Part shown: in pieces, positions 976-24,416 of the stretch
How positions within the stretch are numbered: the stretch's first letter is position 1
Layout of the letters: each line of letters begins with the position of its first letter
IMG/VR virus record: IMGVR_UViG_3300042305_001773
Coordinates: 62,001-126,000 of that record
DNA: 64,000 nt
Reading direction: 5' to 3' (one strand)
The notes under the pieces: model-generated
What the model saw: the letters and a program-made list of their open reading frames with translations, nothing else
Told to the model about the DNA's origin: nothing
The model's database searches: none
Translations under genes and position numbers: made by a program

Positions 976-2118
976 TCAGGCGGGGGCGCAAACAGGCCCG
1001 TCACAGCGTTTTTGCTCAACCCAATTGGGCGGCAACGTATACCAGCCTTTGTCGTAAAGCTGGTAGATCTTTTGAAACGCTTCGTCATACATAGCGCCGC
1101 ATGCTTCAAGACTGTAGGTGCTGCGGGCGGCTTTTGCAATTGCAGCGCGGTCAAGGTCGCGTACTTTGGTGAGGGCCTGCATCCAGTCAGCCAACGTCTT
1201 GCAGCGAAATCCGTTGACGCCGTTTTGTACCGTTTCAGTGAACGCGCCGTAATCTGTTGCGATGAGCGGCGTACCGCACAGCAGACCCTCGACACCAGAG
1301 CCGCCAAACGGCTCAATAAAGTTAGTGGGCATGAGCGAGCAAATAGCGTTGCGCATAAAATCACTGCGCTCGCGACCAGCCAGCGGACCCTTGTACACGA
1401 TGTTCGGGTGCGCCCAACGTGTGTGATCGCCCTGCCCGCACAGCACGATCTTGGCGCTGCGATCTATGTTGGGTAAAAACTTGGCAATTTCATATAGCGT
1501 GTCGAGCCCTTTGCAAGCGTCAATACGACCGAGAAACGCGTAATACGAGCCGGGCTTGAAGCTGGGCTGCCAGTCTTCGATATCAAAATAGTTCGGGATC
1601 ACGAACTCGTAGTGCGCACCTTGCCGCCCATCTTTACCGGCGTGATAGTGCCGCCACGCGTAGCTCTCAAATATCTTAATCGTGCCGTCAACCAGTGTGG
1701 GGTAGCCAATGCCAGTTTCAACGTGAGTGTTGTCAGGGAAGTCTTGCAGCAGCCGTGAGTGCGCGTGGCCGAACGGGTGGCAGATGATGTCGCGCGGTTT
1801 GACCCGTTGCTTCATCGCCGGAACAAGGCGTTCTTCAAACAACCGATGATGCGGCGCGCCGACTGTGGCGTTGTCTCCATGAAACGCTTTCTTGTCACGA
1901 TTGCCCAGCATGTTTTCAAATTCGTCATGCGTGAGCATTTCTACTTTCTCGTCAGCCAGACTTTCACTGCCGGCGTTCGCGTACTCAATGACGCGATACC
2001 CGTACATGCGCAGCATTTTGGAGAAGCGCAGAGCTTTTCCGGTGAACGCGCAATGGGAGTACGCTGCCGTATGCTTGGTGTGAAAGATACCAACGAGATG
2101 CAGTGTCGGCCGTGACAT
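976..2118 (-). CDS. Glycosyltransferase, GT4/GT-B fold
   Basis: FLGRIDACKG and EPFGGSGVEGLLCGTPLIATDYGAFTETV (EX7E-type GT-B C-terminal motif). Confidence 0.88.
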   Translation of the reverse strand: MSRPTLHLVGIFHTKHTAAYSHCAFTGKALRFSKMLRMYGYRVIEYANAGSESLADEKVEMLTHDEFENMLGNRDKKAFHGDNATVGAPHHRLFEERLVPAMKQRVKPRDIICHPFGHAHSRLLQDFPDNTHVETGIGYPTLVDGTIKIFESYAWRHYHAGKDGRQGAHYEFVIPNYFDIEDWQPSFKPGSYYAFLGRIDACKGLDTLYEIAKFLPNIDRSAKIVLCGQGDHTRWAHPNIVYKGPLAGRERSDFMRNAICSLMPTNFIEPFGGSGVEGLLCGTPLIATDYGAFTETVQNGVNGFRCKTLADWMQALTKVRDLDRAAIAKAARSTYSLEACGAMYDEAFQKIYQLYDKGWYTLPPNWVEQKRCDGPVCAPA

Positions 2119-9167: not shown

Positions 9168-9542
9168 TCAGGCAGTCGGCGGTGTCGGCTGTACGGACGG
9201 GGGAATAGCCGGGGCCGGAGGCGGTGTGATTGTCACAGTGCCGTCAGCGTTGTACGTGAACTGCCCAACCATAGCTGCGCCTTCTTGAATCGCTTCGGGC
9301 CGAACTTCAGCGATTAAGGCGCCGAGCTTGGCGTGCAGTCGAAACACTTCGACAGCATCTGTTCCAAGTGCCGAGGCGATTTGCGAGGGGGACGCCTGCG
9401 GGTTACGCCAAAACTGCTTGGCGCCCTGATTAAACGCCGTCACCATGCTTTGAAACGTGGTGCGCGCTTGCTGCTTGATCTGGTTCGCTTGGCGTTGAGC
9501 CGGCGTGAGTTCGTTGACGACTGGGGTATCGAGAATGCTCAT
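9168..9542 (-). CDS. Hypothetical protein with Pro-rich tail
   Basis: GGAG RBS; has its own promoter and terminator. Confidence 0.75.
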   Translation of the reverse strand: MSILDTPVVNELTPAQRQANQIKQQARTTFQSMVTAFNQGAKQFWRNPQASPSQIASALGTDAVEVFRLHAKLGALIAEVRPEAIQEGAAMVGQFTYNADGTVTITPPPAPAIPPSVQPTPPTA

Positions 9543-9566
9543 GAGTTTGCTCCATTAGGTGTTATC

Positions 9567-9595
9567 AGTATACCTGCCAACACAAGTTTGCTCAA
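9567..9595 (-). promoter_or_regulatory. Sigma70-like promoter
   Basis: Minus strand TTGAGC-N17-TATACT. Confidence 0.65.
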
Positions 9596-9598
9596 CCG

Positions 9599-11872
9599 CT
9601 ACACAATGGTTGGGACGCGCCCGGCAGTAGTGCGCAAATAATTGAGATTGAAGAAATCTGGTCGAACCTTGATGGCGCGATACCACACGTTTGGTAGTTG
9701 CATTTCAAATACAACACCCTGATTCACGCCAGTCGTCGAAAAGTTAAATTCTACGGTATTTGGGTTGTCCGCGTTTAAAAGCAACGTGCCTGAATACGTT
9801 GTGTCATTTGCTTTCAAAAACGTATACGACCCGCAGCAGGGCGTGTTGCCGTACGGCGATGCGCCGTGCGCCCGAACAATCGCCAGAGAATTCGCAAGAT
9901 CTATTTCGTATACGACGCCGCGGTGCGGGCGACTAGAGCACGTCTGATTGTCTGAAATAGAGACGATATCGTTGCCGGGTGTCAGCGGCGTAAAATCTAC
10001 GTGCCAGCGTGCGTCGTGTTGCGCGTCAGTGCCGTTGTATTGACTACCAGATACCGTAGGCTCACCTTGCGGCGTTAACCATTTAGTATTCTGCGTCATA
10101 TTTTGTTTGATAACAGGCGCAAGCGGGCCGGCGTGACAGTAACCAGTACCAGAGATAATCCAAATGATATCTTTTGTCTCGTAGTCAATAGCGAACACTG
10201 CGCCGTTGTGCCGGCAGCTGACCACGATATTGCCGGTTACAGGATTGACGTCGACAGAATTCAGGTGGAAGTAGTCTGAATACGTGGTGTTGAAGTAATC
10301 GTCACTCCACCATTCCCATACGATCTGGCCCTGTGGGTTTTGTTCTTGGATATAAAAGCCGGTGGCGTCATATGACTCGCACAAGATGTTGCCCTTGCGC
10401 GCTCCGGGCCCCTTTACGGCGTGGGATTCGTGAATTTCCCATGTGTGAAAACCGCCGCGCGTGTCGGGGTTAATCATCGTATAGGGCTTGGCCGTTAAAT
10501 CGTTCAAACCGATATTGATGTCCCAGCGCGGCGCGGTGTTTGTAGTGCCGTTGGTCATTAGTTTGTTTTTGTCCCACCCGGCGTGCAAACTGACAACTTC
10601 TGCCAGTGAACTGTCGTTGTATGTATACCAAACAGGCACGGCGTTTGAATTGTAAACTGCCATATACGCGCCAACGGGCGCCGCAATGTAGTAGCCCGGA
10701 ACATACGCGTTTGTTTTTGTAGAGATGACGGGTAACGCCGGAAAGTCGCTCGGGAGAATGCGTACGAAATAACTCTGCGCGCCAATTTTGATGCGCAGCG
10801 CTTTATTGACCGTCGCTGTACCTGTGACCGCGGTGCCGCCATTGATGGTGACAGAATAATTGCGCGCAGATGAGCTGTAGAAATCTGTACCCGACCAGAC
10901 AACGTAATCCTGAATTGCCGGATTGAAAGCCGGCTCCATGTCGTTGCCGTCCACAGTAACCGCGAGGCTCGTTACTGTGGCGTTCGACGGAATCTCGACG
11001 AACATGTCCGAGAACAGAGGCTCCTCAGAGATCAATTCCGTAGAAAGAACAGTCGCAGCCCACTGCACCTGATGCGCTGTTGGACCAGTGACCGTGATTG
11101 CAAGCGCTTTGTTTACGCCGTCGGCAGTGACTTCAACGCCAGAGTCTTCCGGCCAGTCCGCGGCAACTACCTCGGCCACGGGAACACCGGACAGACTGAT
11201 ATTGTTAGCATAATCCCTGTAAATGCTGCCGCGGATCGTCCACGCCGCGGAAGTCGTAGCGGACAGGTCGTACGCGGATACTTTGACTTCAAACGCCCAT
11301 GCGGCTCCGGGCGCCAGCGTCAAATATCCAGCCGTACCGTTAATGTACATGCGGGTTGGCGTGTCGTTTTCGGTCGTTGCACGCAGCGTGTACACCGAAA
11401 ATTGTGCGTCACCCGGCGCAAAGAAACTGCCCGCCGACAAAGCCAGTTGAGATTCTTTGGCAGCCACCGCGTGCTTGCCCGCGGCAATGCTATTTAAACC
11501 GCCGGCTGTGTTGTTCGCACCGCCCAGCACAACAGAATTGACGCCGCTAGCTGTGTTGTCTTGTCCGCCCACAACCGCTGACTTCGCGCCAGACGCCGTA
11601 TTATTGCCGCCGCCTAGCGTGGCGGCATTTAGGGCGCTAACGGTGTTGTTCGCGCCGCCACCGGCAAAACCGTCTGTGCCGGTGACCTCGTTATTGGTGC
11701 CGGGGAGTTCGGCGCCGGTCGCGGAGTAGGCCAGTTGGTTCCACGGAGTGATACCGTCGCCATACTTGATCTTGCCCGTGTCGATCTCAAGACACGGTTC
11801 GCCCGCCGCAAGAACTTCGTTTTGATCAGCAAGATAACTTGCCGTTCCTCTTTTAATTCTTATTTCTATCAT
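9599..11872 (-). CDS. Fibre-like protein with C-terminal arylsulfotransferase (ASST)-like propeller
   Basis: IRIKRGT..GEPCLEIDTGKIKYGDG N-terminal module; GGxNNTA adhesin stalk repeats; cadherin-like segment; IHESH, FHLNSV, SCRH, QHDARW motifs. Confidence 0.8.
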   Translation of the reverse strand: MIEIRIKRGTASYLADQNEVLAAGEPCLEIDTGKIKYGDGITPWNQLAYSATGAELPGTNNEVTGTDGFAGGGANNTVSALNAATLGGGNNTASGAKSAVVGGQDNTASGVNSVVLGGANNTAGGLNSIAAGKHAVAAKESQLALSAGSFFAPGDAQFSVYTLRATTENDTPTRMYINGTAGYLTLAPGAAWAFEVKVSAYDLSATTSAAWTIRGSIYRDYANNISLSGVPVAEVVAADWPEDSGVEVTADGVNKALAITVTGPTAHQVQWAATVLSTELISEEPLFSDMFVEIPSNATVTSLAVTVDGNDMEPAFNPAIQDYVVWSGTDFYSSSARNYSVTINGGTAVTGTATVNKALRIKIGAQSYFVRILPSDFPALPVISTKTNAYVPGYYIAAPVGAYMAVYNSNAVPVWYTYNDSSLAEVVSLHAGWDKNKLMTNGTTNTAPRWDINIGLNDLTAKPYTMINPDTRGGFHTWEIHESHAVKGPGARKGNILCESYDATGFYIQEQNPQGQIVWEWWSDDYFNTTYSDYFHLNSVDVNPVTGNIVVSCRHNGAVFAIDYETKDIIWIISGTGYCHAGPLAPVIKQNMTQNTKWLTPQGEPTVSGSQYNGTDAQHDARWHVDFTPLTPGNDIVSISDNQTCSSRPHRGVVYEIDLANSLAIVRAHGASPYGNTPCCGSYTFLKANDTTYSGTLLLNADNPNTVEFNFSTTGVNQGVVFEMQLPNVWYRAIKVRPDFFNLNYLRTTAGRVPTIV

Positions 11873-11878
11873 GTTTTA

Positions 11879-14800
11879 TTACGTGTTAAAGGGTGCTGTC
11901 GGGGGTGTGAAGTTGCCGGTGTAAAGTGCCGCGCCCTTCGTGATGCGCAGTTCATCAATGTAGCCGTTAAACCCGTACTGGGCCGTGTGCGCGTAACCGC
12001 CGATCGTCGGCAAGTATGTGAGATTGTTGAAATCAAAAGCGCTATTTACCGGGTCCCCGCCAACACCGTCCAGATACAACCGCATGACGCCGTTGTGCCG
12101 ACACAGCGCAAAGTGCTGCCAAGTATTATTCGACACGGCCGGTCCCCACACATATGTGCCGGGATTTGCTGAGCCGTGATCGAGAAACAGATTGCCTTCA
12201 GAGATTTGCAATGCCAGATAGTTAAAACCGCTTTCGACTTGGCTGTAAATTGTGGTGCCCGGGTCTGGAGCAGTAGGATAAATCCAACCCTCGATTGTAA
12301 AATCTCCCGTACCATACGCGAACATCTCAGGATCTGTCGGTGTCACTTGAACGTTGTCGCCGTAACCCGTGAAATCGCCGCTTGCTCCGTCAAACTTGCT
12401 TTCCGTCGTGCTGATGGCTGCGTTGCCGTTTGACGTTACCGCGTGCGTGTTCGCGCTGCTGTCGGTGAACGTAGTACTACCGTTCGCGCCGTCCATGTGA
12501 AGAAGCAGCACTGTGTTGAATGGCGGCGGCGGCAAGCAGCGATTGATCAAACCACGCTCTAACGCAATCAGCGCGGCTTCGCCCAGCGCGTGGTCAAAGA
12601 TAACTATTTCCGCGATATCGCCGATCAGCGATTCGTTTGCCGCGAGCGAACCGCCGTGACCAATAAACAGGTCTCCGCCCTGTTTAGCTGCCATGTCCGC
12701 ATACAGCGTCGTAGAAACTTCTTCGCCGTTGACCCGGAGTTTCAGCAGTCCGTCAGCGTTAACGGTGTAGCTCAACAGCGTCCAGTCTAGCGGAAGTGTT
12801 GTCGGATACGCGCCGCACTCGTCATTGCCGTAATTACCGGTGCAAGAGGCGTTGTAGAACGTCAACCGATCGGACGGAGCATTGACGTTGATCGTAGCGC
12901 CGTCGAGCGAGTTGTAATCTAGTCCGCTGTCAGGCTGAAAACTCAAAATTCGCGCGTAGGCGTGGTCGTTGTTGGCTTGCTTGAACACCATAAACCCGCT
13001 GGAGTTCTTCAAGTTAAATTGATAACCCACGTCCAGCACGTTCGGGTCGCCGCTGAAGCGCACGACGTCCTGTCCGTTTGGCCCCTCGCCGACCGCCACA
13101 AACGGAGCCGGCGCATAGTCAGCCGGAGTCGCCGTACGGCCGTTTCCGCTCTTGTCAGCCCACGTAACAATCGTGCCGTTAACCTCGCCAATATCGCCCG
13201 TCGAGTCGAGCCACAGATCGCAGCCGGTGACGTCGGTCGGTGTGACGTCGGCTGTTGCGCGGAAAGGAGCAGTCGGCGGGGTGAAGTTGCTTGTGTAGAC
13301 AGCTGTGCTTTTAATGACACGCAGTTCGTCGATATAGCCATTCAACACCGCTGTGGACGGCGAATATCCACCGATGAGTGGCCTGTTAGTTGGGTTTACC
13401 TGATAATTGGTGCTGTCTATAAAGTCACTGCCGCTTTGAACGCCGTCAATAAACAATTTTGTGATACCGCCGCTTCTACAAACGGCGAGGTGATGCCACT
13501 GATTCGCCGTAATATTTGCAGACGCAGAAATGCGATCAGCCGCATTAACGTACCAACGGACATTCCCGTCAGAAATGTACCACGCGGGCGAATTGTTTTC
13601 ATCATAATTTCGCCATTCCATGATGTGCTGAGGTCCGGCCGTGCTATTCAAAAACACCCAGACCTCGACGGTAAAGTCGTCGGACCCAAACGCAAAATCA
13701 TTTGAACTTGCAACCACCAAAGTGCCGGCGCCGGCTAGTGCGAGACTCGCGCCGCCGAACTTGCTCTGTGCGGTGCTGATTTGAGCATTGCCGTTAGCGG
13801 TCACCGTCAACGCATTAGTAGACGAATCCGTAAACGTCGTACTTCCATCAGCTCCGTCAAAATGGAGGAGCAGGTCAGCGGTCGGGCCGGGAACAAACGG
13901 ATTCGGGAACGGAACCGTGGGCGGCGTGAAGTTTGCTGTATAGCGGGCGACGCCCTTTGTAATGCGGAGGTCGTCGATGTAGCAATCGGTTTCCGCAAGC
14001 TGATAGTTGATGGTAGACGCACCAATACTAATACGCGATGCTCCTGTTGGTATCACCGCAGATGTCGTCGTACCTTGCGAGACGCCATCTATGTAAAAAG
14101 TGCGCGTGCTACCGATCTTGGTAATTGCATAGTGATTCCAATAACCAAGAGCCGGGAATGTCACGCTGAACGGCGACGATGAACCGAAATAGTTCCAGTC
14201 AAGGGTTGAATTATTATTGATCAGCCCCCAAGTTTCCCCAGAGTTGTTTTCAAAACAAACGTAGCGATCATTTGGCTCCGTAGAGGTAAATCTCATCCAC
14301 CACTCAACTGTGTAGTCCGCGCTCTCTAGGTCAAAGTCGCCGTCTACCGTCAGGCAGTCGTCCGATTGCAGCAAAACGCTCGCCCCGCCGAACTTGCTCT
14401 GCGCTGTGCTGATGGCAGCGTTGCCGTAGTCGGTCACGGTATTCTGCAGGTACGAGTTGTCTGTAAATACAGCGCTGCCGTTTGCGCCGTCCATATGAAG
14501 CAGCAGCGTGACATTCTCGGCGTAAGGGTCGCCCGTTGGTTGCGTAGCCGGCGGGATGACCGGATCAGGAAGCGCCTTGGTCGGCGGATTGAACTCGGCG
14601 ATGTAACGCGCCACACCCTTCGTAATCCTGAAGTCGTCGATCAGGCCGTCGAGGTAGTAGTCGTCTTCGTTCGTCCAGCGCCGGCCAATCACGGCGGTTG
14701 TCTGCGTGCCGCCGTCCAGATTGATATTTGTATTCGCGGTCGCAACTTCGGCGCCGTTGATGTACATCTTCAGAACGCCGTCGAGCCGCACGAACGCGTA

Positions 14801-17800
14801 GTGCGCCCACGTGTTGTAGTACTCGGCGATGTTGGCCGACACGAATGTGAAATTATCCATGTCGTAGCAGAAGCCAAACATGTTCGTGTCGTCGCTGAAA
14901 CCGATCAGGTACGTGCCGGCTTCCTCTGCTGTCGACGCCGTGGAGAACACTGCAGAGTACTGAACATAACTCAGCTTGCCCCAGAACTCGACGGTAAAGT
15001 CGCCGTCGTCAAAGGCGAACTCGGGTGACATCGCGATCTCGCAGTGTCCGCCCGCAAACTCGCCGCTTGCGTTGCCGTACTTGATATCTTCAAGATTCAG
15101 GTAGGCGCTGCCCGTCGCCGCGACCTCGTGGTTGTGCTTGGACGTGTCGATGAACGTCGTGATCGGCCCAGTTCCGCCACCACCGCCGCCTGCGGCATCT
15201 GGAAAGGCCGCCGTGGGGGGCGTAAAGTTATCAGTGTAGCGCGCGACACCCTTGGTAACCCGCAGTTCGTCGATATAGCCGTCGAAGTTGTACGACGGGC
15301 TGTGGCCGTAACTCCCGACCTGCGGCGTGAACGTAGTGTTGGCGAAATCAAAAGTGCATGCCGCCGGCACGCCACCAACGCCGTCAACGTAAACAGTGGC
15401 CATCCCCTCCTTGCGGCATACCGCAATATGGTGCCACGTGTCGGCCGTTATCGAGCCGCCGTAGACATACGCGCCGGGATTTGAGTAGTTAAAAATAAAC
15501 TGGACTAGTCCGTTTTCGGTTCCAAGAACGCAATAATTGTTGCCCGATGTTGATTGGCCATAGATAACGTGCCAACTGCTTAAATCCGCGCTATTGACCC
15601 AGCACTCGATGGTGAAATCCTCTGTGCCGTAGGCGAAGTTCGCAGATGCGGGGGCGGTCAAGAACGAATTAGAACCGCCGTTAAAGTACCCGCTCGCGCT
15701 GCCGAACTTGATCTCCCCGGTAGAAACAACCGCGTCCCCGGTGGCGACGACGGCCAATGCGTTCGGCGACGAATCGACAAAGGTCGTGCCGTTATTCTCG
15801 CCGTCCATGTGGAGCAGCATCGAAACGTTGTTGAAGTACGGATCGACTCCGGGCGGAGGAACGAGCGTGATCGTGGGGTTTAAGAACGGCGCCGCTGGCG
15901 GATTGAAGTTTTCCGTGTACAGCGCTGTGCCTTTTATGATGCGGAGTTCGTCGATGTGGCCTTTGGAAAAACTTGCAGCGGAAGCTAAGTTCGCATCCGC
16001 TCCGATGTATGTTGGGCCGGGGTTGGTAAGCAAACTACCCGCGTATGTAAATGACAAAACTTGAAGGCCGTCGATAAAAAGACGGAAATTATCTCCAGCT
16101 CGGGTCGCCGCCACATGGTGCCACTGCGCCGGCGCGTATGTTCCTGCCAAGGTAGTGTCCAGCCAACCAGCCCCGGTACTACACAACAGCCTGAACGCGC
16201 TCACACCAGCATACGCACTAATACGCACTTGTGCTGCAGCGGCGCTTTCGCCGACCGTGATCAAAGTATGCGAACCGTCGCCGACGCCACTGCTGTCGCT
16301 CTCTGGTCGCCACCACGTTTCCACAGTCCAGTCACCGCTGCTTAAGTCTATTGCCGCAGTTGGCGCTATCGTGAGTGCAGACGCGGCGTCAAAGTATGCG
16401 CTCGCCCCGCCGAACCTGCTCTGCGCCGTGGATATGGCCGCGTTGCCGGCGCGAGTCACGGCCAACTGATTTTTGCCGCTGTCCGTAAACGTCGTGCTGC
16501 CGTTTGCGCCGTCAAAGTGCAGTAGAAGATCCGGGGCGGGCGTAGACGTTGTCGCAAAGGGCTCCGTCGGCGGCGTGAAGTTAGCTGTATAAACGGCCGC
16601 TCCTTTGACGATACGGACGTCGTCGATATAGCCTTCTACGGTGTATGGTGCTTGTGACGTTCCAATAGTTAACATGTCTGTGGGGTTTAGTACGTACGAA
16701 ACAGAATTGGGCGCGCTGGCGATTTCCGCTCCGTCCGCGAAAAACCGCAGCGTTCCGCTGTGGCGGGCTACTGCTACGTGCACCCACTGCTCAACCGGGC
16801 AGACCCAGCCGCTGCTAGAAAGATCCCAGCCGGTGCAGCCGACACCCATACGAACCTCTGTGGCGCAATTCACGCTCCACGTGCCACATTGTGTTGCGCC
16901 GCCAAATATAGAGGTGTCGCTGGTGTTGGAAAGACGCATCCACCACTCTGCAGTGAAGTCGCCGGTTCCGAAATCAAGCGCAGAAGAATAAGGTATTGAA
17001 AGATATCCACCCCCGCTGCGCGACATAAACAACGACGAGCCGCCAAACTTGCTTTGTGCCGTGGATATGGCGGCGTCACCGTTCGCCGTCACAGTCAGCC
17101 CGTTCTTGCCGCTGTCCGTGAACGTCGTGCTGCCATTTGCGCCATCAAAGTGGAGCAGCAGCGCGGGACCGGCTGGCGGGTTCGGGAACGGCAGGGTGGG
17201 CGGCATGAAGTTGGCGGTGTAGAGGGCCGCGCCCTTCGTGATGCGGAGTTCGTCGATGTAGCCGTTAAAAGTCCTGTAGTTCTCGCCATCCGCCCCTATT
17301 CTGAGATCAGAACTCACCAACGCCGGCCGTGCGCTGTCGTTCACTGTGCCGATTAGTGTGCCATTGGAGAAGGCGTACCAATCGTCGCCGGAACGGCAGA
17401 GAGCCAAATGATACCAGTCCCCAGCAACGGGACTCCACTGACCAAAAACTATATCTCCAGCCGAGCCCAGATGAAAGCCAAGAGCGCTGCCCGGAATCAC
17501 TGGTGCGTTCCAATACAAACCCCATTTCGGGTTGCCCCCGCCGCCGCCAGACTGACCACATATGCTGGTAGGCTGTTCGGTATCTGTAAAATTCAACCAC
17601 ATTTCTATAGTGAAGTCACCGGCGTTCACAAAGTCCCACAAGGAGGAGTCCGGGATAGACAACCAAGAGCCACTGCCGTTGAAATACCCGCTCGACCCGC
17701 CAAACTTGCTCTCTGTTGTAGAAAGCGTCGCGCCATTCGCTGTAACAGTCAGCCCGTTCTCGCCGCTGTCTACGAACGAAGCGCCGTCGAAATGCAGAAG

Positions 17801-20800
17801 CAGCGCCGTCTCAACCGTCGGCATCGTGACGACCTTGGTGTAGCCGAGCGGAAACGAGGCTGTGGGCGGCGTGAAGGCAGCCGTATAACGCGCAAGTCCC
17901 TGCGTGATGCGCAGTTCGTCGATATAAAATTCTTGCGGACCAAAATCAGCGGCCTGTTGACCCACTTGTACTGTGGCGTATTTGGGCAAGTTAAAAGCCG
18001 TGCCCGAATACACCTGCACGCCGTTTACATACATCTTAAATTCGTTTGCGTCTGCGTTGTTGACCCACGCAAGATGCGCCCAAGAACCATATGTATATGG
18101 CGTCGGCGTACTCGGAAACGAATCTGCGGACGGCGTATTTCCCGCGCCCAGCGCTCGCATATAAATAGAATTATCTGCGACTGCGACGTCCATAATCCAG
18201 CGATTTGGAAAATTTTGAGAACCAGCGCCGAGAACTTGTTGGTTATTTACAACGCTCGGGCCGGCGCTTAAAAACCAGCACTCTACAGTCCAACTGCCGC
18301 TAGAGAGATCTACGCCCGGGAAACCGTCAAGATAGTCTGTGTCCGTGTCGGGGCATTTGAGGCTTGCGCCGCCGAACTTACTCTGCGCAGTACTGATTTG
18401 AACCGTTCCTTCAGCCGTAGCCGATCCAGCTAGAGGAGAAGAGTCAACAATATTGGTGCTACCGTTTGCGCCGTCCATTTTGAGGAGCAGCGAGACCTTG
18501 TCGAAGTCGGGGTCGAGGAGCGACTGGCCGGCTTGATTGGGAAACTCTGCTGTGGGCGGCGTGAAGTTGGCCGTGTAGCGCGCGACTCCCTTCGTGATGC
18601 GCAGGTCGTCGATGTACATTTCGGATGTGAAACCGATGTTGTTGGGTTGCATGGCCCCGATCAGCAATCGGTACGGGCCAGCCAAGGGCGCGATGGCGGA
18701 AGAGCCGACGCTCGTGCCGTCCACATAAATCGTGACGGTGCCGTTCGCTCTTGCCGCCGCGATATGAACCCACTGCTCTCGCGGAACCACGCCGCCTATG
18801 GCGCATTGCTGTGTCCCTTCGTCCCACCTCAAGGCGTCGTCAGATCCGATCCATAAATGCAATCCGTAAGGAACATTAATGGTATTAGAAAGATTCAAGA
18901 CCGTAGCGTCGCCAACGGATGACGGACGCCAAACCCACGCTTCAAGCGTCCAATCCCCTTCGGACATGTCCTCGAAGTCCGAAAAATCTCCACTATCCAG
19001 ATAGCCGTTGCCCAAAGACAACGAAGAGCCGCCGAACTTGCTCTGTGCGGTTGAAATAGCAGCACTACCGTTTGCGGTTACAGTCACCGCGTTCGCGCTG
19101 CTGTCGGTGAACGTAGTACTACCGTTCGCGCCGTCCATGTGAAGAAGCAGCGACACGTCGTTGAAATACGGGTCACCGTTACCGCCATCAGTGCCGACCC
19201 CTGCGTTCGCGGGTTTGTCCATATGGAGCAAGAGTGAAACGTTGTCGCCGTATACGTCAGCCGTGAAGTCTTCCTTGCCGAGTTCGTAGTTGTAGAGCAT
19301 CTGGACGTCCTGCAACGACAAGACGCGATCCCAGATACCAAGCTGATCTACCACACACGCGAGGTCGTTCTGCGTCGCCGTCTGGTCGCCAATACCGACG
19401 CGCAGCGGAATGTTTCCCGCACTGAACGACCCGAGCGTGGCGACCTGCGCGGCCTGTGAACCGTTGAGATACAACGTAAGCGTGTTGGCGGTGGCGCTGT
19501 ATACCAGCACAACGTGATGCCAGAGGTTGGCTTCTAGATCCGGCACGACAACGGTGTAAATATCGTCGTCTGTGGCAATACGACCAAACACGGCGTTGGT
19601 GTCAGACCCGTCGTCGCCGAAGCCAAGTTCGACCTGCCCAGAAGCGTTGCCGGCTGCCCAGTTCTGCACGAGCACAGACCGGCCCCCAGCCATGGACGCT
19701 GCTTTAAACCACGCCGAGATAGCGAACGAACCGTCGAGCGCAAAATCGCTGGGCGCCTGTAGGTAGTTGTTTCCGCCAGTAAACTCCGCGGCGTTTTCAA
19801 TGACACCCGAGTCAAAACCAACGGTGCCGGTCGGGGTCAGCGGTACTTCGGCGGCGGTGATATCTAAACGAGCGCCGGTTTCTTCGTTCAACGGCCAGAA
19901 CGCTTTCATGCCCTCACACAGCGGATGCACAGCGCTTACAACAGACCAGCGCTCCATCATGTAATTTTCCGCGTCCAACAAATCGGCCGCGGACAAGACG
20001 CTGTCGTACAAGACAATCTCTGCAATGTCGCCGCTGTAGTTGTCATCGGCAAAGTCGCTGCGCGAGCCGCCGAGCGAAAGGTGCGTCATCGGCGGGACGG
20101 TAAACCCCTCGACTGACACCGTGTTTAAACCATTTAACCGCGTAGACAAACCGGCCAGACTAAACTGCAATGTGTAGACAACCGGTACAAGATTATCGAC
20201 TGCCTGTGTTGCGCTATATTCACCGTCAAAAAATACGCCAAACTCTCCGCCTGTTTCTGTACCGCACAACACAAGCTCTGTGTTGTTGTTAGCCGTATAT
20301 GCCGCAATAACTTTACCGTCGGCACTCGCGCCCCGTCGGCGTAGAGCAACGAGCAGTGTAAACTCCTCGGGCAGGTCCAGCTTGCCGATCATCGCGTCGT
20401 TCTCACCGTCGAACGTCACGACATCTTGATTTGCAAGTTGATTGGCAACAGTCGGTCGGTTTGCTTTATTCGACTGCACGAACTTTGCGTCAGAGTCGGA
20501 AGCGTCCTCCCACAGCGACACGCGGTTGGCAACGCGATGCACGTAGTCAACATTGTCGGCGTCAAGCCACAGTTTCAGGCCGGGTAACGTAGGCGGACTG
20601 AACGTACCGGGTACGGCCGGAACAGCGCCGGCAGTGAACTCACCGCCGTCAACAACTTCCAGCGCGGGATTCGAATATGGTAGGTCGCGCCACGGAGTTA
20701 CACCGTTGCCGTACTTCACCTTATTTGTGTCAATCTCAAGACCCGGCTCGCCGCGGAGCAGAACGGGGTTGAGAGCGTACAGAGCCGCAGCAGTACCGCG

Positions 20801-20824
20801 CTTAAATTGAATATTTGATGGCAT
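11879..20824 (-). CDS. Giant multi-LamG (concanavalin A-like) fibre/adhesin (2981 aa)
   Basis: IQFKRGT N-terminal module; about 13 LamG-type modules, mostly LLLHxDGANGSTTFTDSS...AISTAQSKFGG...YIDELRITKGVARYTANFTPPT. Confidence 0.88.
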   Translation of the reverse strand: MPSNIQFKRGTAAALYALNPVLLRGEPGLEIDTNKVKYGNGVTPWRDLPYSNPALEVVDGGEFTAGAVPAVPGTFSPPTLPGLKLWLDADNVDYVHRVANRVSLWEDASDSDAKFVQSNKANRPTVANQLANQDVVTFDGENDAMIGKLDLPEEFTLLVALRRRGASADGKVIAAYTANNNTELVLCGTETGGEFGVFFDGEYSATQAVDNLVPVVYTLQFSLAGLSTRLNGLNTVSVEGFTVPPMTHLSLGGSRSDFADDNYSGDIAEIVLYDSVLSAADLLDAENYMMERWSVVSAVHPLCEGMKAFWPLNEETGARLDITAAEVPLTPTGTVGFDSGVIENAAEFTGGNNYLQAPSDFALDGSFAISAWFKAASMAGGRSVLVQNWAAGNASGQVELGFGDDGSDTNAVFGRIATDDDIYTVVVPDLEANLWHHVVLVYSATANTLTLYLNGSQAAQVATLGSFSAGNIPLRVGIGDQTATQNDLACVVDQLGIWDRVLSLQDVQMLYNYELGKEDFTADVYGDNVSLLLHMDKPANAGVGTDGGNGDPYFNDVSLLLHMDGANGSTTFTDSSANAVTVTANGSAAISTAQSKFGGSSLSLGNGYLDSGDFSDFEDMSEGDWTLEAWVWRPSSVGDATVLNLSNTINVPYGLHLWIGSDDALRWDEGTQQCAIGGVVPREQWVHIAAARANGTVTIYVDGTSVGSSAIAPLAGPYRLLIGAMQPNNIGFTSEMYIDDLRITKGVARYTANFTPPTAEFPNQAGQSLLDPDFDKVSLLLKMDGANGSTNIVDSSPLAGSATAEGTVQISTAQSKFGGASLKCPDTDTDYLDGFPGVDLSSGSWTVECWFLSAGPSVVNNQQVLGAGSQNFPNRWIMDVAVADNSIYMRALGAGNTPSADSFPSTPTPYTYGSWAHLAWVNNADANEFKMYVNGVQVYSGTAFNLPKYATVQVGQQAADFGPQEFYIDELRITQGLARYTAAFTPPTASFPLGYTKVVTMPTVETALLLHFDGASFVDSGENGLTVTANGATLSTTESKFGGSSGYFNGSGSWLSIPDSSLWDFVNAGDFTIEMWLNFTDTEQPTSICGQSGGGGGNPKWGLYWNAPVIPGSALGFHLGSAGDIVFGQWSPVAGDWYHLALCRSGDDWYAFSNGTLIGTVNDSARPALVSSDLRIGADGENYRTFNGYIDELRITKGAALYTANFMPPTLPFPNPPAGPALLLHFDGANGSTTFTDSGKNGLTVTANGDAAISTAQSKFGGSSLFMSRSGGGYLSIPYSSALDFGTGDFTAEWWMRLSNTSDTSIFGGATQCGTWSVNCATEVRMGVGCTGWDLSSSGWVCPVEQWVHVAVARHSGTLRFFADGAEIASAPNSVSYVLNPTDMLTIGTSQAPYTVEGYIDDVRIVKGAAVYTANFTPPTEPFATTSTPAPDLLLHFDGANGSTTFTDSGKNQLAVTRAGNAAISTAQSRFGGASAYFDAASALTIAPTAAIDLSSGDWTVETWWRPESDSSGVGDGSHTLITVGESAAAAQVRISAYAGVSAFRLLCSTGAGWLDTTLAGTYAPAQWHHVAATRAGDNFRLFIDGLQVLSFTYAGSLLTNPGPTYIGADANLASAASFSKGHIDELRIIKGTALYTENFNPPAAPFLNPTITLVPPPGVDPYFNNVSMLLHMDGENNGTTFVDSSPNALAVVATGDAVVSTGEIKFGSASGYFNGGSNSFLTAPASANFAYGTEDFTIECWVNSADLSSWHVIYGQSTSGNNYCVLGTENGLVQFIFNYSNPGAYVYGGSITADTWHHIAVCRKEGMATVYVDGVGGVPAACTFDFANTTFTPQVGSYGHSPSYNFDGYIDELRVTKGVARYTDNFTPPTAAFPDAAGGGGGGTGPITTFIDTSKHNHEVAATGSAYLNLEDIKYGNASGEFAGGHCEIAMSPEFAFDDGDFTVEFWGKLSYVQYSAVFSTASTAEEAGTYLIGFSDDTNMFGFCYDMDNFTFVSANIAEYYNTWAHYAFVRLDGVLKMYINGAEVATANTNINLDGGTQTTAVIGRRWTNEDDYYLDGLIDDFRITKGVARYIAEFNPPTKALPDPVIPPATQPTGDPYAENVTLLLHMDGANGSAVFTDNSYLQNTVTDYGNAAISTAQSKFGGASVLLQSDDCLTVDGDFDLESADYTVEWWMRFTSTEPNDRYVCFENNSGETWGLINNNSTLDWNYFGSSSPFSVTFPALGYWNHYAITKIGSTRTFYIDGVSQGTTTSAVIPTGASRISIGASTINYQLAETDCYIDDLRITKGVARYTANFTPPTVPFPNPFVPGPTADLLLHFDGADGSTTFTDSSTNALTVTANGNAQISTAQSKFGGASLALAGAGTLVVASSNDFAFGSDDFTVEVWVFLNSTAGPQHIMEWRNYDENNSPAWYISDGNVRWYVNAADRISASANITANQWHHLAVCRSGGITKLFIDGVQSGSDFIDSTNYQVNPTNRPLIGGYSPSTAVLNGYIDELRVIKSTAVYTSNFTPPTAPFRATADVTPTDVTGCDLWLDSTGDIGEVNGTIVTWADKSGNGRTATPADYAPAPFVAVGEGPNGQDVVRFSGDPNVLDVGYQFNLKNSSGFMVFKQANNDHAYARILSFQPDSGLDYNSLDGATINVNAPSDRLTFYNASCTGNYGNDECGAYPTTLPLDWTLLSYTVNADGLLKLRVNGEEVSTTLYADMAAKQGGDLFIGHGGSLAANESLIGDIAEIVIFDHALGEAALIALERGLINRCLPPPPFNTVLLLHMDGANGSTTFTDSSANTHAVTSNGNAAISTTESKFDGASGDFTGYGDNVQVTPTDPEMFAYGTGDFTIEGWIYPTAPDPGTTIYSQVESGFNYLALQISEGNLFLDHGSANPGTYVWGPAVSNNTWQHFALCRHNGVMRLYLDGVGGDPVNSAFDFNNLTYLPTIGGYAHTAQYGFNGYIDELRITKGAALYTGNFTPPTAPFNT
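12449..12509. repeat. 61-bp exact direct repeat, copy 1 (copy 2 at 19091-19151)
   Basis: gttcgcgctgctgtcggtgaacgtagtactaccgttcgcgccgtccatgtgaagaagcagc read identically at both loci. Confidence 0.85.
19091..19151. repeat. 61-bp exact direct repeat, copy 2
   Basis: Identical to 12449-12509. Confidence 0.85.
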
Positions 20825-20838
20825 GATGTGCTACTGAG

Positions 20839-23559
20839 TTAGGATACGACTGTTATGGGCAAACCAGCGGTGGCACGCAGGTAATCAATGTCGAAATAGT
20901 CTTTAGAGACTTTCGTGATCCTATAGAGATCGCCGGGAAAGTCTACCGCAAAAATGACGCCCGTGGGAGAAGCGCCGTCGCCGGCGTCACCGTATTCGAC
21001 AAGCGGCGGGTGTTGCTGCGTGAAATTTAACACGTGGCTAAATGAGCCGTTATCGTGCAGCATGATTTGATAGCTGCCGAGGTAGCCGGACGTGCCGTTG
21101 GGGGCAAAAGCACTAGAACGGTGAATTGCGTGCTCGTTAGTCAGGTCAATTTCGTAAATAACGCCACGGGCAGCAGGCGAGTTTTCGCTATTTGGCCAGT
21201 ACGTTAAAGCACGCGTTGCCGTGATTGTACCCGTAGCCGTAACCGTACCCGTTGTCGCGACGTTATAGGTAAACGTGTTTGCGTTTACAACGGCGACAGA
21301 AAATACACCATTGAACACAGCCTCGTTTGCCCCGGTTACCTTCACATACGAGCCGTTTACAAAACCGTGCGCCGTTGCGGTACCCGTGACAAGATTGCCG
21401 TCCTGCGCAAGTGCCGTCACCGTTTTGGGCGAATTAGTGCTGCCGGCAAAAAACCCCGCTTGATTGTCAAATATTGCAACAACTTCGTTGCCCGGCGTAA
21501 GCGGATTTACATTAACAGCCCAGCGCGCATGATGCTGGCCTTCAGGGCCAAGATACTGGTAACCCTCTAGTTCCGGCTCGCCTTCAAGGGTCAGCCATTT
21601 GGCGTTATCCAACGTGTACTGGTTTGCCGTCTGCTGAATACCGCCCCACGGTTGTGACGCACCCTGAATCACCCACTTGACGTTTTTAGTCGCGCGCTCA
21701 ACGCAAACAATAGCTGAGCACTGCCGGCAGCTGAACAGCATGTCGCCTGTAACCGGGTGGATATCCACCGAGTTCATGTGGAAGAACGACGCGTTCCGCG
21801 CCAGCGTTGTCTGGTCAAACCTGTCGCTCGTCCACCACTCCCAGCCGATCGTGTTTTGCGGGGTCTGCTCTTGGACATAGACGCCGTACGCTTTGTCGGT
21901 CAGGGCTTGTGAGCCGGCGGTTGGCTGCGTGACGAACGTGTTGTAAAGAATATTGCCACGCTGTTGCGGCGGGCTCTTGATTTCTAAAAACTCGTGATTG
22001 CCAAAGTTGTATTGGTAGCTATTGCCGTTTCGAATAGCTGGCAAAAAGCTGAATTCTTTAGTGTCAATAGAGTCTTCGGTGATCGTCATCGAGAAGCGCG
22101 TACCTGTGCCGTTACGGCTGACGCCGATCTTGTTCCGGTCGTTGCCGTGCTGCGCTAAGTGCGGCGTGCCGGCGTTCTGTACGTACCACACCGGTACGCC
22201 GTTTTCGTCGTACACGATATTGTAGTTGTTGACATTAATGTCACGGCGGCTTGTCGTGATGTAGTAGCCGGGCACGTAGCCGGCTTGCGGCTGTGTTGTA
22301 ATCGTGCCGAGCGGCATATCGGACGGGAGCAGGCGGACATAGTAATCGTCTGTGCCGTTTGTTACGCGAATAAGCTTCCCGACCGAGCTAACACCCGGAT
22401 AAGCGACGCCGTTAACCGTCACTGTGTAGGTGACAGATGAGCCAGCCGCCACAGACGTCGTCAGAATGCCGTAGTCGCGGATTGCCGCGTTGAATGTCGG
22501 ATACAGCGTATTTGTGTTACCGACAATAGAAGCAGTAATTGTGTTAATTGCGCCGGTTACGTTCAACGTGACAAACGCCTCGTAGTTAATAGACGGTTGC
22601 GGAGGCGCCGAAATCGTGTACGTGTTCTCGCCGCCGCCGTACAGCGTTTGAACTTCGGCTGGTGTCAGCGCGCGATTCCAGACACCAAGGCAGTCGATAT
22701 CCGCTGACACAACGTTCGTGCGTCCGAGCATAAACTTGGCTGTGGCGTTCGTCGGGCCAGCGCCGCTAACGAGCACGGCAGCGGTTTGAACGCCGTTTTC
22801 ATAAATGCGCAGATAGTTTTGCGTCGTGTCGTGTACAAAGACAATGTGGCGCCACTGGGCATATGGTAACTCGGTGGCGGTGGCAACTGTTGTGTTTGCA
22901 GTCCCAACTTTCGGTAACCACGTGAGCTTGCCGTCGGGCGCAAAATAAATACGGGCCTGATCAGCTGCGCCGAAGCCGGCGATATTTACAAGCGGATATT
23001 CCGCCGCTGTGGCGCCAAGTAGCGTCCAGTACCCCGGCGAGGGTACGTAGCCAGCGGCGCCAATAAACGTGTGCATCCGCCACAGCTGCCCGTTGAGCGA
23101 AACCATATCGCCGGGGCCGTATGTAACGCCACCGTTATATGCGCCCTTAAAGCGCGTATCGACTTTGACCCACATCGCTAAAGTCTTATGTCCGACAAAA
23201 GCGTTATTTGCGTAATAGAAATTACGCTTTGCCAGCCGCAGTGCGCCGTCGAAACCCGACACTGTCTGCTCCGAAACTCCTTCATACAGCGTGACATTGC
23301 CGCCAGACACGTCATCGACACGCATGCTGTTTCGGTCAAACATCCAGAACGCCATCAATCCTTGGCGCAGCTGGTCATACTGTACTTCGCCGCCGTCGAC
23401 GCCGCCGGACGTCGTAAGGTCAACGACGGAACCGTCAGCTTTTTTCGTAAACAGCCGCCCGTCGGCGGTATTGATAGCTAATTCGCCGAGGGCGAGGTCG
23501 GCGGCTGTCGGTACGGCGCCGGCGTCGCCGCTGCGCTTGTGCTTAATAATGTTTGCCAT
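20839..23559 (-). CDS. Fibre-like protein: LamG + CBM5/12-like + ASST-like propeller
   Basis: IIKHKRSG..LALGELAINTADGRLF N-terminus; YGPGDMVSLNGQLW module; NHEF, FHMNSV, SCRQ, QHHARW motifs. Confidence 0.8.
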   Translation of the reverse strand: MANIIKHKRSGDAGAVPTAADLALGELAINTADGRLFTKKADGSVVDLTTSGGVDGGEVQYDQLRQGLMAFWMFDRNSMRVDDVSGGNVTLYEGVSEQTVSGFDGALRLAKRNFYYANNAFVGHKTLAMWVKVDTRFKGAYNGGVTYGPGDMVSLNGQLWRMHTFIGAAGYVPSPGYWTLLGATAAEYPLVNIAGFGAADQARIYFAPDGKLTWLPKVGTANTTVATATELPYAQWRHIVFVHDTTQNYLRIYENGVQTAAVLVSGAGPTNATAKFMLGRTNVVSADIDCLGVWNRALTPAEVQTLYGGGENTYTISAPPQPSINYEAFVTLNVTGAINTITASIVGNTNTLYPTFNAAIRDYGILTTSVAAGSSVTYTVTVNGVAYPGVSSVGKLIRVTNGTDDYYVRLLPSDMPLGTITTQPQAGYVPGYYITTSRRDINVNNYNIVYDENGVPVWYVQNAGTPHLAQHGNDRNKIGVSRNGTGTRFSMTITEDSIDTKEFSFLPAIRNGNSYQYNFGNHEFLEIKSPPQQRGNILYNTFVTQPTAGSQALTDKAYGVYVQEQTPQNTIGWEWWTSDRFDQTTLARNASFFHMNSVDIHPVTGDMLFSCRQCSAIVCVERATKNVKWVIQGASQPWGGIQQTANQYTLDNAKWLTLEGEPELEGYQYLGPEGQHHARWAVNVNPLTPGNEVVAIFDNQAGFFAGSTNSPKTVTALAQDGNLVTGTATAHGFVNGSYVKVTGANEAVFNGVFSVAVVNANTFTYNVATTGTVTATGTITATRALTYWPNSENSPAARGVIYEIDLTNEHAIHRSSAFAPNGTSGYLGSYQIMLHDNGSFSHVLNFTQQHPPLVEYGDAGDGASPTGVIFAVDFPGDLYRITKVSKDYFDIDYLRATAGLPITVVS

Positions 23560-23570
23560 GTGAGTACCTG

Positions 23571-24416
23571 TTAGTAAGCGCCGCCGTCGATAATAGAGTT
23601 GTTGTAAATAACGGTACCGCCGCCACCAAAATTAATTGGGGCATCATCGGCGGCCGAAAAAGTCATCGTGTTAGATACGGTTAATGTTTTTGTCGCGGCA
23701 ACAACTACGCCGGTGGCGTTTTCACCGGCAGGACCTTGCGGGCCGGTCGGGCCTTGTGCGCCAGTTGCACCAATCGCCCCTGTTTGCCCGTCGTTCCCCG
23801 CTGGACCCGCGGGGCCTTGTGGCCCAGTCGCACCTTCTACGCCGGCCGGACCTGTGCTGCCCTGCGGTCCGCGAATCGGGCCGACGTTGACCCAACTTGT
23901 GCCTGTCCAAACAACGCCGTCGCCGGGTAACGTGCCGACTGGCGCGTCGTTTGGCGCCGGATCGGCGATCAGCCACATATCACCTACATCTGGATTTTGC
24001 GCTGGCGGCCACGTAAGCGCCGTACCTTCAATCGTCACACCGGAACCGGCAGGACCTTGCGGGCCGGTGGCGCCAACAAGTCCTTGCGCACCAGTCGCGC
24101 CGGCGTCTCCAGCAGGTCCTTGCGGTCCCGTTGCCCCCTGTGCGCCAGCAGCGCCCTGTGCGCCGGGCTCGCCTTGAGGACCAGTAGCGCCCGTGTCGCC
24201 AGCAGGGCCTTGCGGGCCTGTAGCGCCGCGCGGGCCAGTCGGCCCTGTGGCGCCAGCTCCGCCCCCGCCACCGCCGTCTGTCAAACCGAGAATGGCCCCA
24301 ATCGTTGTGCGCTTTGTCGCCAGATTGTTCGGGTTTTGCGTATCAACAATCGGGACGATGTCGTTCAGCGTTGGTGTTTGTTTTTCAGGTAACGCTGAAA
24401 TACGTTTATTCGACAT
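23571..24416 (-). CDS. Collagen-like fibre protein (281 aa), paralog of 6062-8602
   Basis: Shares the KRISxLP..IVD..TKxTT N-terminus and WPP..GDxWxI..WTGTxWxNxG domain; Gly-X-Y tracts. Confidence 0.9.

Follow-up and report, generated by a model that had tools for sequence, protein, structure and literature searches.

Background

The PAPS-independent arylsulfate sulfotransferases (ASSTs; Pfam PF05935/PF14269) include two solved enzymes of this type, E. coli CFT073 AssT (PDB 3ELQ, 3ETS, 3ETT, 4P04-07), which is the archetype of PF05935, and Cpz4 (PDB 9KF4, 9KF6), the ASST-type sulfotransferase of caprazamycin biosynthesis in Streptomyces. AssT is a periplasmic homodimer in which a six-bladed beta-propeller is preceded by a beta-sandwich, and its active-site disulfide depends on DsbL/DsbI. 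The chemistry of the family is of the ping-pong type and needs no nucleotide cofactor, His436 of AssT being transiently sulfated (PMC13426309). Characterised ASSTs take the sulfuryl group from aryl-type sulfate donors and have compact pockets (PMC13426309; bioRxiv 10.64898/2026.10.08.757636), while carbohydrate hydroxyls are known only as acceptors (Cpz4, DhAST). The physiological donors of the family are still unidentified after 40 years.

Enzymes are also displayed by phage fibres and tailspikes, such as the endosialidase six-bladed propellers of K1F and phi92 and the O-antigen or capsule esterases such as G7C gp63.1, and the receptor-binding proteins of Staphylococcus phages phi11 and 80alpha (PDB 5EFV, 6V8I) carry a propeller platform. 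Here we analysed a window of 64,000 nucleotides (positions 62,001 to 126,000 of IMG/VR record IMGVR_UViG_3300042305_001773) in which an initial annotation, made from the sequence alone, had proposed two virion fibres tipped with apparently active ASST domains.

Results

Two fibre genes with ASST-type domains

The observation was confirmed: both ORFs exist, are intact, have ATG starts and no internal stops, begin with tail-fibre anchor modules and end in an ASST-type propeller (Table 1). Both proteins match Pfam PF05935 Arylsulfotrans above the curated cut-off (44.1 bits for ORF1 and 43.4 bits for ORF2, against 24.2), whereas PF14269 falls just below its own cut-off (26.4 and 24.7 against 27). 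A scan of the whole genome finds exactly these two genes. The genes are part of a tightly packed cluster in the order collagen-like fibre, ORF2, giant LamG adhesin, ORF1, small ORF, collagen-like fibre. A Pfam search of the inter-domain pieces (ORF1 150-285 and 280-385; ORF2 305-420 and 700-800) and of the 124-aa ORF gave nothing usable, and PHROG scans of 20 neighbouring ORFs were mostly blank.

Table 1. Features of the fibre cluster, in positions of the 64,000-nucleotide window
Position	Strand	Feature	Supporting observation
9599..11872	-	ORF1, 757-aa fibre protein: Mtd_N anchor, YadA/UspA1-like beta-roll, a middle domain, a putative beta-sandwich and a predicted ASST propeller
11747..11863	-	ORF1 residues 4-42, Mtd_N tail-fibre anchor domain	PF18454, 35.2 bits against cut-off 26.3, found again in the whole-genome scan; 74% nucleotide identity with the anchor of the giant neighbouring gene
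11438..11701	-	ORF1 residues 58-145, GGxNNTAxG-type beta-roll repeats, predicted trimeric shaft	Weak matches to UspA1 head repeats and an ice-binding beta-roll; predicted inter-chain contacts recur about every 15 residues in the homotrimer
10736..11020	-	ORF1 residues ~285-379, putative beta-sandwich preceding the propeller, with a PAFxPxIxDY-type motif	Module precedes the ASST propeller in all the family architectures read; no Pfam hit
9602..10735	-	ORF1 residues 380-757, predicted ASST-type six-bladed beta-propeller	AF2 model pLDDT 91, pTM 0.91
10430..10432	-	ORF1 His481 codon (IHE motif), equivalent to AssT His252	Profile alignment to 3ELQ; invariant column
10259..10267	-	ORF1 His536-Leu-Asn538 (FHLNS motif), equivalent to AssT His356 and Asn358	Invariant
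10211..10213	-	ORF1 Arg554 codon (SCR motif), equivalent to AssT Arg374	18-residue spacing from the HxN histidine, the same as in AssT and DhASST
10016..10018	-	ORF1 His619 codon (QH motif), equivalent to AssT His436	In the same column the H436N mutant chain 4P04 shows Asn; invariant
20839..23559	-	ORF2, 906-aa fibre protein: long-tail-fibre-type N-terminus, a weak CBM5/12-like stretch, Laminin_G_3, a putative beta-sandwich and a predicted ASST propeller with an inserted domain
23389..23559	-	ORF2 residues 1-57, tail-fibre N-terminal anchor	phrog_1699, 19966 and 35830 (long tail fibre distal subunit), E 2e-12 to 6e-8; no match to Pfam Mtd_N at E <= 0.01
22648..22965	-	ORF2 residues 199-304, Laminin_G_3 (concanavalin-like lectin) domain	PF13385, 56 bits against cut-off 27.6
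20842..22311	-	ORF2 residues 417-906, predicted ASST-type propeller with H522, H594, N596, R612 and H676	Model pLDDT 89.3
21193..21435	-	ORF2 residues ~709-789, small beta-domain inserted in the propeller and absent from ORF1	BLAST alignment is split; phrog_9998 matches residues 712-782; linkers on either side have low pLDDT in the model; no Pfam family
11879..20824	-	Giant 2981-aa fibre or adhesin between the two ASST genes: Mtd_N anchor plus 12 Laminin_G_3 repeats	Gaps to its neighbours of 6 and 14 nt
9168..9542	-	124-aa ORF directly downstream of ORF1; a fibre-assembly role is only a guess	Conserved in relatives
6062..8602	-	846-aa collagen-like tail-fibre protein bounding the cluster	Pfam Collagen E 3e-89; PHROG tail fibre families
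23571..24416	-	281-aa collagen-like fibre protein just upstream of ORF2
976..2118		Glycosyltransferase gene near the cluster

The C-terminal domains are predicted to be ASST propellers rather than generic propellers

A single-sequence phmmer search against PDB was too weak to reach AssT, and profiles were therefore used; with a mixed profile the best match was Cpz4 (E 9e-42), followed by AssT (E 1e-17). Comparison with the AssT structure and the Pfam families had been named beforehand as a test of the proposal, and its outcome agrees with it. In Foldseek searches the ORF1 model matched Cpz4 (E 1e-13) and AssT (E 2e-11), and the top hits of the ORF2 model were also AssT and Cpz4, E-values ranging overall from 1e-13 to 1e-10. 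By VIA-align the ORF1 model scored Z 31.9 to Cpz4 and 27.5 to AssT, against 19.9 or less for other propellers, and the ORF2 model scored Z 34.2 and 27, respectively, with rmsd about 3 A over 310-370 residues in these comparisons and Z 20.6 or less for the next folds. The top AFDB clusters, with TM 0.69, are named aryl-sulfate sulfotransferase. Concerning the segment before the propeller, the ORF2 model, the only one that included it, aligns partly with the AssT N-terminal beta-sandwich, from model residues 5-8 and chain residues 16-28, adding about 40-58 aligned residues.

The catalytic residues are conserved

All the motifs on which the proposal was based are present, namely WEIHES, FHLNSV, SCRH and QHDARW in ORF1 and GNHEF, FHMNSV, SCRQ and QHHARW in ORF2. 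Profile alignment to AssT chains 3ELQ and 4P04 showed that their roles are those suggested by the initial annotation, H522, H594, N596, R612 and H676 of ORF2 corresponding to AssT His252, His356, Asn358, Arg374 and His436. These are the residues named in the literature as the conserved core (PMC13426309; bioRxiv 10.64898/2026.10.08.757636). In an alignment of 28 ASST propeller domains of the phage fibre type, the five mapped residues all lie among the 26 invariant columns out of 378, and we calculated the chance of this at about 1e-6. In a larger set of about 90 phage-type domains they are present in all but three. The column of Thr501 of AssT (where DhASST has a backbone contact at Tyr416/Ile417) aligns one or two residues before the invariant Gly-Ser (ORF1 G681-S682), in a region where the alignment is weak.

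The conservation of the whole set bears on the possibility that the propeller was recruited only as a lectin-like receptor-binding head, in which the His/Asn/Arg cluster would hold an anionic group of the receptor (sulfate, perhaps phosphate or carboxylate) without any sulfuryl transfer during infection. Two family members (P0082 and P0087) have degenerate catalytic residues yet persist, suggesting that binding without catalysis is viable; non-enzymatic propeller platforms do exist on phage receptor-binding proteins, and no natural ASST donor is known on cell surfaces. However, the nucleophile His and all its helpers are invariant in domains down to about 33% identity, simple anion binding would not need the complete catalytic set, and catalytic residues tend to drift in binding domains that have lost catalysis. 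We consider a binding-only role possible but rather unlikely.

It is also possible that the His-nucleophile centre has been retuned to another ester (phosphoryl, acyl) or another surface substrate, so that the domain would be ASST by descent but not by reaction. The phage-type domains form one side of a branch with SH-aLRT 100, this branch being long and accompanied by a large score gap to cellular ASSTs, and identity to the solved enzymes is only 13-18%. On the other hand, every residue that contacts the sulfuryl group in AssT or DhASST and could be aligned is unchanged, and no ASST-fold enzyme with another reaction turned up in the literature searched, although that search was not aimed at this question. 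This hypothesis appears very unlikely.

Fibre-type N-termini and the predicted trimeric shaft

Besides the anchors listed in Table 1, PHROG tail-fibre N-termini were matched by both ORFs, and tblastn hits to structural or tail-fibre genes of cyanophages and Arthrobacter phages cover only residues 3-111. The first 300 residues of ORF1, submitted in three copies, are predicted to form a homotrimer with a score of 0.96 against a best control of 0.02; in the calibration of this method the mark was reached by 21 of 30 true homomers and by 0 of 23 monomers. Since Mtd_N suggested a diversity-generating retroelement target, we also searched for its hallmarks, but no RVT_1 was found in the genome and no TR/VR-like repeat in positions 5500-25000.

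The genome, its relatives and the distribution of the domain

The genome is a virus record of 205,044 bp (CheckV 100%) from lake water, with sheath-like and baseplate-wedge genes and RNAP beta-like genes. The fibre cluster is syntenic in four related contigs and is far more variable than its flanks, as expected of host-range genes: in a 198-kb relative the flanking genes are mostly 91-100% identical, while ORF1 is 91%, ORF2 84% and the giant adhesin only 46-55% identical. Across IMG/VR loci the ASST module is shuffled among many fibre architectures and often occurs two or three times per contig. The phage clade has about 55 clusters at 50% identity, with a conserved core and diversified loops.

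No ASST fibre was found in 50,697 phage isolates or in BFVD, and no paper in the literature searched links ASST domains and phage fibres. Among 185,579 species genomes there was no prophage copy, and no copy at all apart from one 2-kb MAG contig. Attempts to infer the host gave no indication: DNA polymerase A is 25% identical or less to any isolate, the genome has no psbA or WhiB, and the nearest cellular ASST clusters carry no organism names. The N-terminal anchors resemble those of cyanophages, but this module is widespread and we draw no host conclusion from it. No sulfatase, Sulfotransfer_3 or PAPS reductase was found in the genome.

A further possibility is that the proteins are not a virion receptor-binding device but act inside or on the infected cell, for example by sulfating host envelope or phage components, or that they are released at lysis, the fibre-like N-termini serving only for oligomerisation. 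In favour of this view, the cluster lies about 80-100 kb from the recognisable baseplate and sheath genes, a glycosyltransferase gene lies nearby, and in some relatives the ASST unit sits near the N-terminus or in the middle of the protein and not at the tip. However, Mtd_N and long-tail-fibre anchors are tail-fibre attachment modules, the genes sit in an operon with collagen-like and LamG fibre proteins, hypervariability relative to the flanks is typical of adsorption proteins, and the genome has no sulfate-activation or donor-making genes. We consider this explanation unlikely.

Discussion

The explanation that we favour, with moderate confidence, is that ORF1 and ORF2 are two paralogous trimeric fibre proteins encoded in one fibre operon of an uncultured, contractile-tailed jumbo phage. 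In this view each monomer ends in a complete ASST unit, a beta-sandwich plus a six-bladed propeller, belonging to a phage-specific clade of the superfamily and closest in structure to Cpz4, with the sulfuryl-transfer centre kept (three histidines including the nucleophile, plus Asn and Arg). Most likely the propellers would be host-recognition heads whose inferred pocket would bind a sulfate-ester-bearing, or sulfatable, molecule on the cell surface. They would probably still carry out the cofactor-free chemistry of the family, forming a sulfo-histidine and passing the sulfuryl group to a hydroxyl or to water, and be receptor-modifying enzymes comparable in role to fibre-borne esterases; the absence of a nucleotide cofactor fits an extracellular role. 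It should be noted that our analysis demonstrates the genes, their domain architecture, the fold (on predicted models), the residue conservation, the phage origin and the synteny with hypervariability, while trimerisation of the shaft is a prediction in silico, and location in the virion, a role in adsorption, catalysis, the direction of transfer and the nature of the ligand are only inferred.

The interpretation given by the initial annotation is supported only in part. Its claims that the N-termini are of fibre type, that the C-terminal domains are ASST propellers with an intact catalytic set and that such a domain is unusual for phage fibres hold. Binding or desulfation of a sulfated capsule or glycan was also suggested, but desulfation goes beyond known ASST chemistry, with its aryl-type sulfate donors and compact pockets. 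Sugar sulfates are poor leaving groups, so that simple desulfation of a polysaccharide is not the expected reaction. As for the speculation that the hosts might be PVC bacteria, we found no evidence for or against it.

A bolder hypothesis, which we regard as unlikely on present evidence although it is not excluded, is that the fibres are active virion-borne sulfuryl transferases that chemically edit the host's receptor on contact, either by stripping a sulfuryl group from an aryl-sulfate-type surface molecule or by sulfating a surface sugar. If so, they would be a new class of receptor-modifying phage enzyme and the first pointer to a natural, cell-surface substrate for the ASST family. Enzymatic domains on phage fibres define which surface chemistry a phage reads and are mined as tools, such as depolymerases and esterases, and a sulfuryl-transfer domain would add a new chemistry to that list. 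It would also imply that some abundant lake bacteria display sulfate esters, or sulfatable groups, as phage receptors. For enzymology, ASSTs are sought-after cofactor-free sulfation catalysts whose natural substrates are largely unknown; the phage clade offers a ready-made natural library, and the receptor of such a fibre would be a candidate physiological ligand. Should the domains prove to be binding-only, they would still be a clear example of an enzyme fold recruited as a receptor-binding head.

Comparison with known systems

The platform of phi11 and 80alpha is likewise a per-monomer propeller displayed on a trimeric baseplate fibre and used for sugar recognition. However, it is five-bladed and non-enzymatic, it has no ASST signature, and these structures were only distant Foldseek hits of our models, with TM-scores of 0.15-0.24.

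With the enzyme-tipped fibres and tailspikes the logic is shared: a trimeric N-terminal anchor plus a C-terminal catalytic domain that works outside the cell without cofactors and recognises a surface polymer, although for the phage ASST proteins trimerisation is predicted and catalysis is inferred. Endosialidases also use a six-bladed propeller, and 3GVK and 4HIZ were distant structural hits. Those enzymes, however, are hydrolases, lyases or esterases, and no sulfuryl-transfer domain was found among the phage isolates, in BFVD or in the literature searched.

AssT shares with the phage proteins the predicted six-bladed propeller, a preceding module that in the ORF2 model aligns partly with its beta-sandwich, and aligned, invariant counterparts of its five sulfuryl-coordinating and catalytic residues. 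Its propeller carries much longer loops (454 against 366 residues for the aligned span), and identity is 13-16%.

Cpz4 is a soluble stand-alone biosynthetic enzyme of 472 aa, only about 18% identical and not fused to fibre modules. Its donor is supplied by dedicated pathway enzymes, for which the phage has no genes. It is nevertheless the best structural match (rmsd 2.7-3.0 A over 308-334 residues) and the best sequence-profile match, with the same HxNS...SxR...QHD...YR signature; it is PAPS-independent, and its physiological acceptor is a sugar hydroxyl of a glycoside (PMC13426309).

Genes and conserved motifs

The initial annotation placed in the window two fibre genes ending in ASST-like propellers with an apparently intact active site, and this observation was borne out. 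Both ORFs are intact and lie on the minus strand at exactly the coordinates proposed (see table), and every motif that had been described was found: in ORF1 IHE (H481), FHLNSV (H536, N538), SCRH (R554) and QHDARW (H619), and in ORF2 NHE (H522), FHMNSV (H594, N596), SCRQ (R612) and QHHARW (H676). Both proteins match the Pfam family PF05935 Arylsulfotrans above its curated cut-off of 24.2 bits (44.1 bits for ORF1 and 43.4 for ORF2), and a scan of the whole 205-kb genome with the same family found these two genes and no others.

Features of the fibre cluster and of the rest of the genome (tRNA positions were converted from genome positions)
Feature	Coordinates	Strand	Size or description
ORF1	window 9599-11872	-	757 aa
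ORF2	window 20839-23559	-	906 aa
Domain inserted in the ORF2 propeller	window 21193-21435	-	ORF2 residues ~709-789
Giant protein between ORF1 and ORF2	window 11879-20824	-	2981 aa; Mtd_N anchor and 12 Laminin_G_3 repeats (DNA repeat period about 630-690 nt)
ORF directly downstream of ORF1	window 9168-9542	-	124 aa
Collagen-like (Gly-X-Y) fibre protein	window 6062-8602	-	brackets the ASST cluster
Collagen-like (Gly-X-Y) fibre protein	window 23571-24416	-	brackets the ASST cluster
Collagen-like (Gly-X-Y) fibre protein	genome 165786-170390		next to the baseplate module
Family-1 glycosyltransferase	window 976-2118	-	just downstream of the fibre cluster
Thymidine kinase	window 3205-3807	-	just downstream of the fibre cluster
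tRNA-Lys(ttt)	window 32-102	-
tRNA-Met(cat)	window 59778-59855	-
tRNA-Gln(ttg)	window 61476-61547	-
Two large RNA-polymerase beta-like ORFs	genome 10484-17747		outside the window

Family and predicted fold of the C-terminal domains

A word-indexed search with the ORF1 domain found 38 metagenomic proteins, almost all of which combine Mtd_N or Laminin_G_3 modules with the ASST domain. Twenty-eight such ASST domains were aligned (alignment A1), and a profile made from this alignment reaches Cpz4 (E 5e-9) and AssT 3ELQ (E 6e-4), while a second profile, A2, to which cellular relatives were added, reaches Cpz4 at E 9e-42 and AssT at E 1e-17 across AssT residues 174-568. From these alignments ORF1 H481 corresponds to AssT His252, H536 and N538 to His356 and Asn358, R554 to Arg374 and H619 to His436. 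The H436N mutant chain 4P04 shows Asn in the His436 column, confirming the register. In the ping-pong mechanism His436 is the residue that is transiently sulfated, and the sulfuryl group is coordinated by His252, His356, Asn358, Arg374 and Thr501 (PMC13426309, a 2026 review); a 2026 preprint on the Desulfitobacterium enzyme names the same conserved set. Of these residues, all except Thr501 could be given an equivalent.

AlphaFold2 models built on the alignments are confident, both for ORF1 380-757 (pLDDT 91, pTM 0.91) and for ORF2 320-906 (pLDDT 89.3, pTM 0.82). Foldseek ranks Cpz4 and AssT first, at E 1e-13 to 1e-10, and VIA-align gives Z 31.9-34.2 for Cpz4 and about 27 for AssT, at roughly 3 A over 310-370 residues, while the next, unrelated six-bladed propellers stop at Z 20.6 or less. 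In the ORF2 model some of the AssT alignments extend into the preceding beta-sandwich, and it is therefore possible that the phage module corresponds to the whole two-domain AssT unit. ORF2 also carries an extra small beta-domain of about 80 residues inserted in the propeller, which matches only phrog_9998 (unknown function), is joined by low-confidence linkers and is lacking in ORF1-type proteins. The ORF2-type orthologues among the metagenomic relatives (P0046, P0064, P0066) have propellers of the same ~490-residue length, suggesting that they share this domain.

Conservation of the putative active site

We evaluated whether the mapped residues are under selection. In A1, where identities fall to about 37%, only 26 of 378 columns are invariant and all five mapped catalytic residues are among them, for which we calculated a hypergeometric chance of about 1e-6. 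An exhaustive profile search of 1.84 billion representatives found 3848 relatives, with a sharp score gap between about 55 phage-type clusters (174 bits or more) and cellular ASSTs (144 bits or less). Reading the catalytic columns in all retrieved domains showed the full H..HxN..SxR..QH set in all but three of about 90 phage-type domains: in P0069 Arg is replaced by Lys, while P0082 and P0087 are degenerate, which makes them natural "inactive" controls. A maximum-likelihood tree of 132 domains places the phage-type group on one side of a branch with SH-aLRT 100 and puts ORF1 and ORF2 in different subclades; it should be considered, however, that the group was defined by score to the phage profile, so that the label is not fully independent of the sequences.

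Evidence for a phage fibre identity

The genome is an IMG/VR virus record of 205,044 bp, with a CheckV completeness of 100%, 55.4% GC and nine tRNAs, three of which lie in the window. Outside the window it carries a baseplate wedge homologue, a sheath-like gene, a further collagen-like fibre and RNA-polymerase beta-like genes; two large ORFs match phage multisubunit RNA-polymerase beta-subunit families, suggesting phiKZ-like, host-independent transcription. Inside the window it carries DNA polymerase A, a UvsX-like recombinase, SbcC and helicases.

ORF1 begins with an Mtd_N domain, while ORF2 begins with the N-terminus typical of long-tail-fibre distal subunits. In 50,697 phage isolates only these N-terminal 50-110 residues find matches, in structural or tail-fibre genes of cyanophages and Arthrobacter phages. 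ORF1 residues 1-300 are predicted to form an intertwined homotrimer, with a score of 0.96 against a best control of 0.02; in the calibration of the method the mark was reached by 21 of 30 true homomers and 0 of 23 monomers, although this remains a prediction and not a proof.

The two genes flank the giant LamG protein with gaps of 6 and 14 nt. The cluster is syntenic in four related IMG/VR contigs, and in the 198-kb relative the flanking genes are mostly 91-100% identical, while ORF1 is 91%, ORF2 84% and the giant protein, the most variable gene of the cluster, 46-55% identical, which is the usual signature of adsorption genes. The 124-aa ORF, with no Pfam or PHROG family, is 98% conserved in this relative and occupies the position usually held by a fibre-assembly or chaperone gene. 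Across 22 IMG/VR loci the beta-sandwich-plus-ASST unit is fused to many different N- and C-terminal partners; some relatives carry two ASST propellers in one protein (P0058, P0059), and one 12.3-kb contig encodes three ASST fibres (P0036/P0041/P0055). A location in the virion is only inferred, and the cluster lies 80-100 kb from the recognisable baseplate genes; a role outside the virion was considered as a minor alternative.

Habitat and host

The sequence, whose source is a JGI metagenome, recurs in at least eight lake-water runs, and more weakly in other freshwater runs, from 2016 to 2025. The host could not be inferred, and no evidence was found either for or against the PVC bacteria suggested by the initial annotation. 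In the genome we found no sulfatase, PAPS-type sulfotransferase or PAPS reductase, and no DGR. The glycosyltransferase downstream of the fibre cluster could modify host or phage glycans.

Proposed mechanism

Since the ASST reaction needs no nucleotide cofactor, it is possible to infer that it is one of the few transferase chemistries that could work on a virion outside a cell. The closest characterised enzyme, Cpz4, sulfates a sugar hydroxyl of a glycoside, and DhAST can sulfate sugars weakly. All known donors are aryl-type sulfates, no natural donor has been identified, and the DhASST pocket is compact. We therefore consider it most likely that the propellers are receptor-recognition heads, whose pocket would engage a sulfate ester, or a sulfatable hydroxyl, on the host surface, and that they retain turnover. 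The genes, their domain architecture, the fold as modelled, the conservation of the residues, the phage origin and the synteny of a hypervariable cluster are supported directly by our analysis, and trimerisation is predicted, while presence in the virion, catalysis, the direction of transfer and the nature of the ligand are inferred. The main alternative is a head that only binds, whereas a chemistry altered with respect to that of ASSTs appears, like the non-virion role, a minor possibility. The interpretation given in the initial annotation is supported only in part: its specific idea that a sulfated polysaccharide is desulfated is chemically the least expected variant, because sugar sulfates are poor sulfuryl donors.

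Comparison with known systems

To evaluate whether similar fibres are already known, the ASST domains alone were searched by tblastn against the phage-isolate collection at E <= 0.1, which returned only mis-filed enterobacterial AssT records and one irrelevant hit. Records OR851116.1, OR845375.1 and AFYI01000005.1, filed as phages or placed in the phage collection, carry an enterobacterial AssT gene and look like bacterial fragments, not phage ASSTs. In BFVD the best TM-score was 0.46, with all matches to generic propellers, and no ASST-type phage fibre was found in the literature searched for ASSTs or sulfotransferases in connection with phages or tail fibres. Enzyme-tipped phage fibres are an established pattern and ASSTs a known enzyme superfamily; what we regard as new is the enzyme class that here joins the former, and the phage-specific clade that is added to the latter.
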